From: Bugula neritina
Taxonomy: Eukaryota > Animalia > Bryozoa
Assembly (NCBI GenBank): GCA_964035545.1
Contig: OZ037772.1
Coordinates: 7,486,889-7,550,888, forward strand
Reading direction: 5' to 3'
DNA: 64,000 nt
Position 1 is the stretch's first letter, and each line of letters opens with the position of its first letter. Shown here in pieces: positions 23,905 through 64,000 of this stretch. Made by a program: the position numbers and the translations under genes. The notes beneath the pieces are model-generated. The model saw nothing but the letters and a program-made list of their open reading frames with translations, made no database searches and was not told where the DNA came from.

Positions 23905-26900
23905 ATGAAGAAAATCAAAATGGATTACAATGCAAAAACTCTACACAAGGCTGAAAGCAGAGAAGAAGCTAAACTGCTGCTTGAATCAGTGCCACCAGAA
24001 AAAAGGAGAGACTTATTACTATCTGTCGATGACAAGCAATGTACAGCTCTACATGTCCAAACCAGTAATGGTAAAGCAGATGTAGTTGAATATTTATGTC
24101 ATTCATTCAATACCAATAATGAACTCTTGCTAGCAAAAGATTTAAATGGAAAAATAGCTCTACATTATGCAAAAACCAAAAAAATAGCTGAACTACTTGT
24201 AAAAGCAGTCCCTCTGAAAAAACATAGGGATTTTATATTATCTGCTGATACAAATCAGTGTACAGCATTACATGTAGCTGCCGTCAATGGCGAAAGAGAC
24301 GTTGTGGACTATCTCTGTAGTTTACCAATAACAGAGGAACTAGTGTTTGCAAAATGTAACAAAGGCAAGACAGCCCTTCATTATTCTTCTAACCACAAAA
24401 TTGCACAAACACTTGTAGAGTCAATCACACCTGACAAAAAAAGGGATTTTATATTATCAGTTACTAATAATCAGAGCACAGCATTACATTATGCTGCCAT
24501 TGAGGGTAAAACAGATGTAGTAGAATATCTCTGTAGTTTACCGGAGAAAGATGAGCTAGTGTTAGCAAGAAATGACAAAGGCTGGACGGCCCTTCATTAT
24601 TCTCCAAACCACAAAATTGCTCAAACACTTGTAGAGTCAATCACACTCGACAAAAGAAAGGATTTTATATTATCAGTTGCTGATCATCAGCTTACAGCAT
24701 TACATGTAGCTGCTAGCAATGGTAGAACAGATGTAGTAGAGTATCTCTGCGGTTTACCAGAAAAAGATGAGCTAGTGTTAGCAAAAAGCATTGAAGGCTG
24801 GACAGCCCTTCATTATTCTTCAAACCACAAAATTGCTCAAACACTTGTAGAGTCAATCACACTCGACAAAAGAAGGGATTTTATATTAACAGTTTCTGTT
24901 AATCAGCTTACAGCATTACATGTAGCTGCTAGCAGTGGTAGAACAGATGTTGTAGAATATCTCTGCGGTTTACCAGAAAATGATGAGCTGGTGTTAGCAA
25001 GAGATGACAAAGGCAAGACAGCCCTTCATTATTCTTTCAACCACAAAATTGCTCAAACACTTATAGAGTCAGTCACCCCTGAGAAAAAAAAGGATTTTAT
25101 ATTATCAGTTTCTGTTAATCAGCTTACAGCATTACATGTAGCTGCCAACAACCGTAAAATAGACGTTGTGGAATATCTGTGTAGTTTACCAATAACAGAG
25201 GAACTGGTTTTTGCAAGAACTAACGAAGGCTGGACAGCCCTTCATTATTCTTCCAACCACGAAATTGCTCAAACACTTATAGAGTCAATCACACTTGACA
25301 AAAGAAGGGATTTTACATTATCAGTTACTGATGATCAGTTCACAGCATTACATGTAGCTGCTGGCAATGGTAGAACAGATGTAGTAGAATATCTCTGCGG
25401 TTTACCAGAAAATGATGAGCTGGTGTTAGCAAGAGATGACATAGGCTGGACAGCCCTTCATTGTTCTTCAAACCACAAAATTGCTCAAACACTTGTACAG
25501 TCAGTCGCAGCTGACAAAAGAAGGGATTTTATATTATCAGTTACTGATGATCAGCTCACAGCATTACATGTAGCTGCTGGCAATGGTAGAACAGATGTAG
25601 TAGAATATCTTTGTAGTTTACCAGAAAAAGATGAGCTAGTGTTAGCAAAAAACATTGAAGGCTGCACAGCCCTTCATTATTCTTCAAACCACAAAATTGC
25701 TCAAACACTTGTAGAGTCAGCCACAGCTGACAAAAAAAAGGATTTTATATTAACAGTTACTGAGAATCAGTGCACAGCATTACATTATGCTGCTGACAAA
25801 AGCAAAACAGATGTAGTAGAATATCTCTGTAGTTTACCAGAGAAAGATGAGCTGGTGTTAGCAAAGAGTAACAAAGGCAGGACAGCCCTTCATTATTCTT
25901 CAAATCAGAAAATTGCTCAAACACTTGTAGAGTCAATCACACTCGACAAAAGAAAGGATCTTATATTATCAGTTAGTGATTATCAGCTCACAGCATTACA
26001 TGTAGCTGCCATCGATGGTAAAATAGACGTTGTGGAATATCTCTGTAGTTTACCAGAAAAAGATGAGCTAGTGTTAGCAAAAAATAGCAAAGGCTGCACT
26101 GCCCTTCATTGTTCGTCAAATAAGAAGATTGCTCACAAACTTGTAGAGTCAGTCACACTTGATGACAAAAGAAGGGATTTTATATTATCAGTTACTGAGA
26201 ATCAGTTCACAGCATTACATGTAGCTGCTGACAAAGGCAAAACAGATGTAGTAGAATATCTCTGTAGTTTACCAGAGAAAGATGAGCTGGTGTTAGCAAG
26301 AGATGACATAGGCAGGACAGCCCTTCATCTTTCTTCAAACCACAAAACTGCTCAAACACTTATTGAGTCAATCACATTTGACAAAAGAAGGGATTTTATA
26401 TTATCAGTTACTGATGATCAGTGTACAGCATTACATATAGCTGCTAGCAATGGTAGAACAGATGTTGTGGATTATCTCTGTAGTTTACCAGAAAAAGATG
26501 AGCTGATGTTAGCAAGAAATGACAAAGGCAGGACAGCCCTTCATTATTCTTCAAATCAGAAAATAGCCCAATTGCTTGTAGAGTCCTTAAAAACAGAAAA
26601 ACAGAGATACTTTGTATACATGGTAAACAATTATAAATCTACTGCTTTGCATGTAGCTGCTGAGGAGGGTAAAGTTGATGTAGTAGAATATCTCTGTAGT
26701 CTATATCCAAACAACAATGAACTGATACTAAAAAAAGATGCTGATGGTAATACTGCATTGCATGTTTCTAAAAATCGAGAAATCGCTAGAATACTTTTAG
26801 AATCTGTCACAAAAGTTCAGCAAGCTCGCTTTCTTTTGACTAGTAATAGATATCAGCAGACAGCATTACATGAAGCCGCACGCTCACGTAGAAATGACGT

Positions 26901-63200: not shown

Positions 63201-64000
63201 AAATATTGACCTACTTTAAAATTATATTTTGTTGGCAAATTAGTCTCTTGTCTATTACAAAACTATAATTTTTTGCTCCAATTAGAAGTATAAATATATA
63301 TCAGTTGTTTTGATGTTTTCATATACACTGTTTAAAAACTTGTTTTAAATATAACCCGTATAATTGCATAGATAACTACATGTTCTAAAATAAGCGACTG
63401 AAGATCAGATGATTCTTTGTAAAGGGGTTTGTCATTCTGTCTTTATATTTATAGATAGCAGTTATACAAAGGTATGAAATGGAACCAGATCTGAACTTGA
63501 TACCACCAGGTCCTGACTATCTGATACTCTCAGTAAAATATAACACAGCTAAATACACAAGGTAATGCTATAAACTATTAATTAACTTATTCACTAGATG
63601 TGTTTAACTATTTTTGCATTTATCTTTTATACAACAAAATTCCAATAACTCTTTTCCTCAGAAATTCTGTACCAGACATGGGGAAGCATGGATCTATTCA
63701 TTCTCTGATTTCTGAGTTCAGCTGTGTTCCTGGTGTTAAGAAAGTGAGTGTCAACTCAACCCTAAACAAGAGATACATCAGAGACAATGATAAGTGTCTG
63801 GTAGATGATGGTGAAGAGAGAGAAACATCTGATGAAGACAGAAGTAAAACTAATGATGCTCAAAAGAGAAATGTTGATGGCAAAGAGAGTAGACCAGATG
63901 ACGGTTTTATATTTAGTAAATCAGTTGAGAACTTAGCACTTGAAAAAAAAATTGGAAAGGCATTTATTATATGCAACCAACATAAAGACTCAACGCATGG
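57208..64000 (+). CDS. Ankyrin-repeat / pseudo-caspase / caspase protein, paralogue 3; runs off the window. Exons 57208-61449, 62619-62747, 63455-63561, 63662->64000
   Basis: 16 double-ANK units, then 129-nt and 107-nt exons homologous to paralogues 1 and 2. Exon 4 is open to the window end and reaches KAFIICNQ, the first caspase strand. The catalytic exons are not visible. Confidence 0.85.
62000..62490. repeat. Long compound (TA)n microsatellite in intron 1 of paralogue 3
   Basis: Direct inspection. Confidence 0.97.

Follow-up and report, generated by a model that had tools for sequence, protein, structure and literature searches.

A 64,000-nucleotide stretch of Bugula neritina DNA (referred to below as the window; C8:7486889-7550888 of the 216-Mb genome, C8 being contig OZ037772.1) contains three tandem genes in which a long array of ankyrin repeats precedes a set of small caspase exons. 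Our results strongly supported the view that copies 1 and 2 of these genes each encode a single polypeptide of ~1440 to 2020 residues, which is built of four parts in the following order: the ankyrin array and its tail, which are encoded in one exon; a dead caspase-like stretch; a variable linker; and a caspase with an intact His-Cys dyad. We consider it highly probable that the ankyrin exon and the downstream caspase exons form one gene, and it is very likely that the architecture is real and that the bryozoan family is a variant of a caspase type that has been described but is little known.

The three genes are co-oriented on the + strand and start at 23905, 41826, and 57208, which corresponds to start spacings of 17.9 and 15.4 kb. 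Their + strand ankyrin open reading frames (ORFs), which are located at 23890-28695, 41826-44828, and 57208-61458, have lengths of 1601, 1000, and 1416 amino acids, respectively. An earlier note on this DNA, made from the sequence alone, had described three co-oriented paralogues ~15 to 18 kb apart, and the ORFs, their Pfam ankyrin matches, and the start spacing confirmed this arrangement. Each ankyrin ORF runs as far as a consensus phase-0 donor (28635 followed by GTAAGT, 44777 followed by GTATGT, and 61449 followed by GTAAGT), and AG acceptors precede the next exons, which begin at 29258, 45023, and 62619. The two junctions named in the earlier note (28635/29258 and 44777/45023) have consensus splice sites and are in phase 0. 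In copies 1 and 2, six small exons come after the ankyrin exon; their borders are AG/GT and their phases match. The exon lengths sum to 2023 codons plus a stop in copy 1 and to 1439 codons in copy 2. For copy 3, the window holds exon 2, exon 3, and the start of exon 4. The His, Cys, and p10 exons of this copy (locus L004) are open and intact and are located 0.3 to 1.6 kb beyond the end of the window, with the p10 exon at C8:7552432-7552761. The exons in the window are listed here; X1 to X3 are runs flagged as probable RNA.

Copy 1 exon 1: 23905..28635, + strand, 1577 codons; first ATG, ~40 ankyrin repeats of 36 amino acids, and a non-repeat tail of ~110 amino acids (ORF, Pfam Ank_2, phase-0 donor, and the end of an X3 contig).
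Copy 1 exon 2: 29258..29386, + strand; DYSLIVVSST...YHGKPK, caspase-like without the catalytic His (AG/GT sites in phase 0 and conservation in 14 to 17 paralogues; the profile weakly matches the last part of the His exon, in register).
Copy 1 exon 3: 29582..29688, + strand; IAVIQSS..., caspase-like without the catalytic Cys (invariant PPxP; joint 29688/29798 with GT..AG in an X3 contig).
Copy 1 exon 4: 29798..30140, + strand; conserved VNSTLNKxYxR, variable linker, and start of the active p20 (KALIICNQ..., with an invariant Arg).
Copy 1 exon 5: 30437..30646, + strand; p20 core with the catalytic His in ILSHG (Pfam PF00656 and CED-3 matches).
Copy 1 exon 6: 30787..31031, + strand; catalytic Cys (LLFLSYCRG), intersubunit linker, and beta strand ...CYIMFSTLPDS (joints in X1 to X3).
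Copy 1 exon 7: 31425..31731, + strand; p10 part and TAA stop (acceptor and junction codon read, GT..AG joint in X1 to X3, and 21 genome matches).
Copy 2 exon 1: 41826..44777, + strand, 984 codons; ATG directly after an in-frame stop, ~24 ankyrin repeats, and tail.
Copy 2 exon 2: 45023..45151, + strand; caspase-like, no His.
Copy 2 exon 3: 45738..45844, + strand; caspase-like, no Cys.
Copy 2 exon 4: 45964..46306, + strand; linker and p20 start.
Copy 2 exon 5: 46635..46844, + strand; His exon with ILSHG (Pfam PF00656 match).
Copy 2 exon 6: 47048..47289, + strand; Cys exon with SYCRG.
Copy 2 exon 7: 47647..47983, + strand; p10 and TAG stop.
Copy 3 exon 1: 57208..61449, + strand, 1414 codons; ATG directly after an in-frame stop, ~35 ankyrin repeats, and tail.
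Copy 3 exon 2: 62619..62747, + strand; caspase-like, no His.
Copy 3 exon 3: 63455..63561, + strand; caspase-like, no Cys.
Copy 3 exon 4: 63662..64000, + strand; cut by the end of the window.

Searches, alignments, and folds were run exon by exon on single exons. The His exons of copies 1 and 2 matched Pfam Peptidase_C14 (30437-30649, E value of 2.7e-7 and 31.0 bits; 46575-46904, E value of 6.4e-9 and 36.3 bits), and both scores were above the curated cut-off of 21.4 bits; the remaining exons, taken singly, yielded no Peptidase_C14 match. The best match of the His exon among solved structures was CED-3 (E value of 3e-6), with ILSHG aligned, and the Cys exon alone produced no meaningful match to solved structures. 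The Cys exon starts with LLFLSYCRG in copies 1 and 2, and the exon order His, Cys, p10 is found in all loci. The earlier note had placed a catalytic His (SHG) and Cys (SYCRG) in copies 1 and 2, and both residues of the dyad were indeed present: SHG and CRG are invariant in 19 copies. Further support came from P0049, an annotated, spliced relative of 263 amino acids from Watersipora subatra that spans the His, Cys, and p10 parts. This protein matched Peptidase_C14 over profile positions 51-212 (E value of 6e-10, 39.6 bits), and its ESM Atlas model was nearest to the caspase-8 and caspase-2 clusters (TM 0.55 to 0.58).

The ankyrin ORFs of copies 1, 2, and 3 matched Pfam Ank_2 with E values of 1e-152, 2e-82, and 1e-141, respectively. 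The repeat period is 36 residues, and two repeat types alternate to form 72-residue double units. The arrays of ~40, ~24, and ~35 estimated repeats end in the conserved non-repeat tail of ~110 residues. Across the family, 24 to more than 60 repeats are found in a single exon, and ankyrin ORFs reach 2453 and 3025 amino acids. No Pfam match to CARD, DED, Death, or NACHT/NB-ARC was found in the three ankyrin ORFs or the small exons, as the earlier note had anticipated. Specifically, the three 5' exons, located where death-fold initiator caspases have a CARD or DED pro-domain, matched only ankyrin families in Pfam, and none of the ORFs and exons contained the NACHT or NB-ARC domain that NLR/STAND receptors carry between effector and repeats. 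In addition, the ATG in copies 2 and 3 is directly behind an in-frame stop, which makes an N-terminal death-fold exon unlikely; the first ATG of copy 1 is at 23905. The earlier note had also reported no signal peptide or transmembrane segment. A Kyte-Doolittle scan found no transmembrane-like stretch and the N-termini of the ankyrin ORFs are charged, both of which agree with that statement, although no dedicated signal-peptide or transmembrane predictor was run.

Several lines of evidence indicated that the ankyrin and caspase exons belong together. A genome search with the p10 exon of the family yielded 21 matches in 19 loci. All 19 loci have a family-type ankyrin tail 2.6 to 7.6 kb upstream on the same strand, with tail identities down to ~26%, and the order tail, exon 2, exon 3, exon 4, His, Cys, p10 is kept wherever these parts were detected. 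Most loci contain all seven parts, and the three most divergent loci have no detectable exon 2 or exon 4. The same part order is found in a JGI contig with two genes in tandem (L001), in a Logan contig (L002), and in a locus (L021) of W. subatra (PMC12902671), a species that belongs to another cheilostome family. Paralogue L016 and the W. subatra locus lack intron 1: a single open frame contains both the ankyrin tail and the exon 2 segment ...HG(Q/K)PK and is followed by a donor, and the exon 2 profile matched both segments (E values of ~5e-5 each, among 18 sequences). Exon 2 has no start codon of its own, and the motif GKPK/IAVIQ is split between exons 2 and 3.

Runs X1 to X3 cover exons only, and the intron bins are empty. 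In these RNA-like contigs, GT..AG joints were observed at 29688/29798 (exon 3 to exon 4) and 31031/31425 (exon 6 to exon 7), as were exon 5 to exon 6 joints at 306xx/3078x. A loose end ('...TTTGAAGTG') that precedes 30440 in runs X1 and X2 is compatible with the joining of exons 4 and 5 in a paralogue, and the alignment of a 281-nt X3 contig ends exactly at 28635 with 51 letters left over. Most of the RNA-like contigs are 90 to 99% alike to copy 1 and thus derive from paralogues.

The ~120-residue stretch encoded by exon 2, exon 3, and the start of exon 4 has caspase-like motifs in canonical order and has neither the His nor the Cys. Specifically, DYSLIVVSST is found at the position of LSHG, GKPK/IAVIQSS is found at the position of GKPK-LFFIQACRG, and VNSTLNKxYxR resembles the C-terminal strand of caspases. 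In addition, the intron after GKPK matches, in position and phase, the intron that follows IKK in the active module. Judged by these motifs, the stretch looks like the remnant of an internal duplication in which both catalytic residues were lost. The stretch is conserved: the ratio of nonsynonymous (dN) to synonymous (dS) substitution rates is 0.16 to 0.3 between older pairs. When profiles were compared, exon 2 matched the His exon weakly (E value of 0.005, 7% probability), and nothing was found between exon 3 and the Cys exon or between the start of exon 4 and the p10 exon or a canonical caspase. The true p10 exon also fails this test, so its blanks carry little weight. We also asked whether the ankyrin tail could be the N-terminal half of a complete dead caspase domain and set this possibility aside; comparison with a canonical caspase of the same genome in hhalign yielded an E value of 0.58, and a PDB profile search with the tail yielded no match. 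The AlphaFold model of the tail, which is all helical with a mean predicted local distance difference test score of 52, was too poor for a fold search.

The genome-wide family count stands at a minimum of 19 genes, an answer to the question of family size that the earlier note had raised. The tandem array continues past the window with a fourth copy at C8:7567000-7577700 (~80 to 91 kb on the scale of the window), which has an ankyrin ORF of 2453 amino acids. A second group of four members, two per strand, is located at C8:7335000-7362500, 125 to 150 kb upstream of the window. Elsewhere, locus L022 (C2:30506000-30515900) has a different ankyrin ORF of 977 amino acids (2550-5483), which has caspase exons (6492-7726) of a more canonical kind (HRDGSEND, VIMTHG, and KPKIVIFQSCAG) downstream of it on the same strand. 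The data suggested that about four L022-like units are present in tandem at C2:30.50-30.55 Mb, and genes of this type may be a second ankyrin-caspase subfamily. The caspase repertoire is very large overall: with half of the candidates scored, the whole genome contains at least 179 exon-level Peptidase_C14 (PF00656) matches. Many are clustered on C1 (33-35 Mb), C6, and C7, and several are located inside open frames of 400 to 700 amino acids that may hold other fused domains.

All exons, the ankyrin tail included, are under purifying selection, with dN/dS values of 0.1 to 0.5 in every exon. Comparison of copy 1 with a paralogue 150 kb away yielded dS values of 2.4 for the ankyrin tail and of 0.24 and 0.16 for the His and p10 exons, respectively, and the high DNA similarity dropped within ~20 bases of the exon borders. 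Two explanations are compatible with this strikingly uneven dS: short gene-conversion tracts that do not extend beyond the exons, or unusual constraint on synonymous sites. Copies 2 and 3 (41001-42872 versus 56383-58254) are 89.5% identical over 825 bases of 5' flank and the first 1050 bases (~350 codons) of the array, and the remainder is far more divergent. The pattern points to a recent conversion or recombination that would have covered the promoter and N-terminal repeats. Because copies 2 and 3 are alike in the 5' flank and the start of the array and then diverge, the genes are mosaics.

The positions that are randomized in designed ankyrin binders are the canonical ankyrin binding positions, and we fixed these positions as binding positions beforehand. 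Within the arrays, entropy and dN were highest at the binding positions. For one repeat type, dN/dS was 1.0 to 1.2 at the binding positions and 0.3 to 0.4 at the remaining ones; for the second repeat type, dN/dS at the binding positions was 0.25 or could not be computed due to saturated dS. Over both types, positions outside the binding set had values of 0.2 to 0.6. These values indicate relaxed or mixed selection at the binding face, a pattern that relaxed constraint and positive selection would explain equally well. The earlier note had called the family a candidate for diversification, a description that these values (1.0 to 1.2 at best in one repeat type and 0.25 in the other) did not sustain.

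We favor the following reading of these genes, to which we assign a probability of about 0.6. The ankyrin array would stand in for the CARD or DED of initiator caspases and would bind a partner or ligand, given that its most variable positions are the canonical binding positions. Binding would bring together or release the protease domains and activate them by induced proximity, and the protease might then serve as a common effector for cell death or signaling. The cleavage specificity of this effector may differ from that of Asp-specific caspases, whose S1 pocket appears to differ from its own. The array may plausibly act as a ligand sensor that gates the protease directly, and an immune or allorecognition role of the genes would likewise be plausible.

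Several observations weigh against this reading. The dN/dS ratio at the binding positions is ~1 rather than greater than 1. With respect to the protease, the Asp-binding S1 pocket of caspases is made up of Arg179, Gln283, and Arg341 (caspase-1 numbering). At the position of Gln283, the first residue of QACRG, all copies have Ser, Cys, or Gly (S-[YCFAS]-CRG or xxCRG). Moreover, the Arg341 loop (STLPDS to KPG) is four residues shorter in a by-eye alignment than the loop of L020, a canonical intronless caspase in the same genome; it reads STLPDS-K-SKPGLMF across the junction of exons 6 and 7, with no Arg at the Arg341 position. We tentatively conclude that the set of residues needed for Asp binding is incomplete, the Arg341 call being one made by eye, and the pocket sequence suggests that the P1 preference has changed. 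Given the substitution of Gln283 and the shorter Arg341 loop, Asp-directed caspase activity cannot be taken for granted.

With respect to the fusion, no read or contig in X1 to X3 was seen to join the ankyrin exon to exon 2, or exon 2 to exon 3, of copy 1, and the RNA status of these runs is a program's guess. The RNA depth on the ankyrin exon and exon 2 of copy 1 was nil to very low; this low depth says little either way because the ankyrin exon and exon 2 are too divergent between paralogues to gather contigs. The Ensembl model of the W. subatra relative comprises the caspase part only, and no full-length ankyrin-caspase protein was found in the public collections searched. In these collections, the ankyrin-tail query matched ankyrin-only ORFs, the p10-exon query matched exon-sized fragments and the 263-amino-acid W. 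subatra model, P0049 matched only itself, and the last 100 residues of the ankyrin exon, which were used as a junction-peptide probe, had no match. The claim of the earlier note that the ankyrin exon is spliced in frame to the caspase exons thus gained support from the splice sites, the 19 colinear loci, the two loci without intron 1, and the partial RNA joints, but not from a spanning read; at 28635/29258, the RNA evidence consists of the contig end at 28635, and no contig was seen to continue into exon 2.

The alternative that best survived is that the array is a recruitment or scaffold domain, which docks the caspase to an endogenous activator or structure in ordinary developmental death, such as the cyclic regression of bryozoan polypides or metamorphosis. 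The literature proposes that ankyrin caspases are recruited by an unidentified partner (PMC11463336), and purifying selection in all exons, including the ankyrin tail (dN/dS of 0.2 to 0.46), is in line with such docking. The genome-wide PF00656 matches also point to broad caspase use rather than to a dedicated receptor family. However, the paralogues differ greatly in repeat number and arrays while their protease exons are nearly identical, which is hard to reconcile with a single endogenous partner, and the variation is concentrated at binding-surface positions. We regard docking as unlikely, but it deserves serious consideration.

It is quite doubtful that the genes encode one-component receptors in the strict sense. 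In such receptors, the arrays of different paralogues would recognize different non-self or allelic ligands, and recognition would switch on the attached protease directly, without an adaptor or NTPase; the arrays would diversify by repeat shuffling, and the protease would be kept uniform by short-tract gene conversion. If true, the family would be an animal equivalent of the immune receptors that couple repeats to an effector, here with a caspase as the effector and with ligands such as a pathogen protein or an allorecognition cue of a colonial animal. We gave a similarly low probability to a protease that has left the Asp-specific niche and either cleaves after another residue or acts mainly as a scaffold, so that the family would serve signaling in the manner of paracaspases rather than act as a death effector. 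The replaced Gln283 and the short loop without Arg are what such a protease might show, but an invariant Arg fits the likely Arg179 position (again in a by-eye alignment), the W. subatra relative keeps an SW..R motif at the Arg341 loop, and the loop was aligned by eye. Finally, it is highly improbable that each unit consists of two neighboring genes, one for the ankyrin repeats and one for the caspase, that were duplicated together: the lack of a spanning transcript, the absence of an ankyrin part from P0049, the only annotated relative, and the nil to low RNA depth on the ankyrin exon would suit two genes, but the ankyrin ORFs stay open up to a phase-0 donor, exon 2 lacks a start codon, the ankyrin tail and exon 2 are found in one frame at two loci, the order and strand are kept at all 19 loci, where identity falls as low as 26%, and also in a second genus, and GKPK/IAVIQ bridges exons 2 and 3, the latter of which is spliced to exon 4 in an RNA-like contig.

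The rest of the window contained the following elements. A 212-amino-acid, intronless-looking ORF at 11335-11973 on the + strand has a PIH1 N-terminal domain (E value of 4e-37) and represents an ordinary neighboring gene. On the - strand, ORFs at 4215-4553 and 7175-7558 are rich in cysteine repeats of the CxxCPxGxYC type and are likely to be exons of a large extracellular-repeat gene. The G+C-rich island at 17000-20300 (49 to 51% versus 30 to 38% around it) is one copy of a dispersed repeat. Its ~2.1- to 3.1-kb unit is present at least 40 times, with ~82% identity, across all large contigs, and the copy in the window has no long ORF. This island is probably an old transposable element. In the spacers, a reverse-transcriptase fragment (RVT_1, E value of 3e-9) is located between copies 2 and 3 at 52655-53530 on the + strand, and long (CA)n and (TA)n tracts are found at 35.8-36.2, 40.4-40.6, and 62.0-62.5 kb. 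Two near-identical segments of ~150 bases with twin ORF translations (33581-33736 on the - strand and 36650-36805 on the + strand) are inverted relative to each other, 3 kb apart, and flank the (CA)n tract between copies 1 and 2. A search of Rfam found no RNA families in the window.

Among known systems, a long pro-domain is typical of initiator caspases, and the bryozoan proteins share this feature with CED-3 and caspases 2, 8, and 9; in addition, CED-3 is the best match of the His exon, and caspase-8 and -2 are nearest to P0049. In contrast to these caspases, the bryozoan proteins have an ankyrin array as pro-domain, S-[YCFAS]-CRG in place of QACRG, and a shorter Arg341 loop. With its apparently altered S1 pocket, the protease may have a cleavage specificity that is new to the caspase family proper. 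The dead stretch may have a parallel in coral caspase-X, the nearest precedent, and in the cFLIP-caspase-8 pair: a catalytically dead caspase-like module is located ahead of an active caspase in one polypeptide. In Acropora caspase-X, the dead module in front damps the killing activity (PMC4715348). However, the first Peptidase_C14 domain of caspase-X is complete and the protein lacks ankyrin repeats, whereas the bryozoan stretch has ~120 residues and its profile support is not significant.

NLR/STAND receptors and prokaryotic caspase-like proteases with repeat arrays, which have been reviewed (PMC8195603), resemble the bryozoan family in that variable, superstructure-forming repeats are coupled to a conserved death or signaling effector and the genes form expanded, lineage-specific clusters. 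Unlike NLR/STAND receptors, the bryozoan genes have no NACHT/NB-ARC switch and no death-fold adaptor, and the repeats are fused directly to a metazoan-type caspase. The same protease module located behind very different and very long arrays is a natural experiment on whether repeats can replace death-fold adaptors when caspases are activated.

The closest likeness is to the caspases named "ANK caspases" in Genome Biol Evol in 2024 (PMC11463336; preprint 10.1101/2023.12.11.571055), and the architecture, which the earlier note could not confirm to be undescribed, has therefore been described before. ANK caspases were first noted in Schistosoma (Lee et al. 2014, as cited in PMC11463336). In the sixty lophotrochozoan genomes examined, which did not include bryozoans, they were unique to parasitic flatworms except for one gene of Alitta virens, and they were proposed to be initiators; the flatworm clade is sister to the DED caspases (PMC11463336). 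On gene structure, the bryozoan genes have what defines this type, namely, ankyrin repeats N-terminal of a caspase in one polypeptide, with the joint between the ankyrin exon and exon 2 not seen in RNA. Like the flatworm and A. virens proteins, they are lophotrochozoan, proposed initiators with an ankyrin pro-domain in place of the CARD or DED. The literature treats ankyrin-prodomain caspases as a peculiarity of parasitic flatworms, and a large bryozoan family in at least two genera changes the known distribution. Its genes are intact and under purifying selection, and there are signs that they are expressed. The bryozoan family also raises the question of whether the ankyrin-caspase fusion is old in lophotrochozoans or arose several times. 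Compared to the flatworm ANK caspases, the bryozoan family comprises at least 19 genes, partly in tandem, has 24 to more than 60 repeats in one exon, and adds a dead caspase-like stretch and an apparently altered S1 pocket; the likeness is one of architecture.

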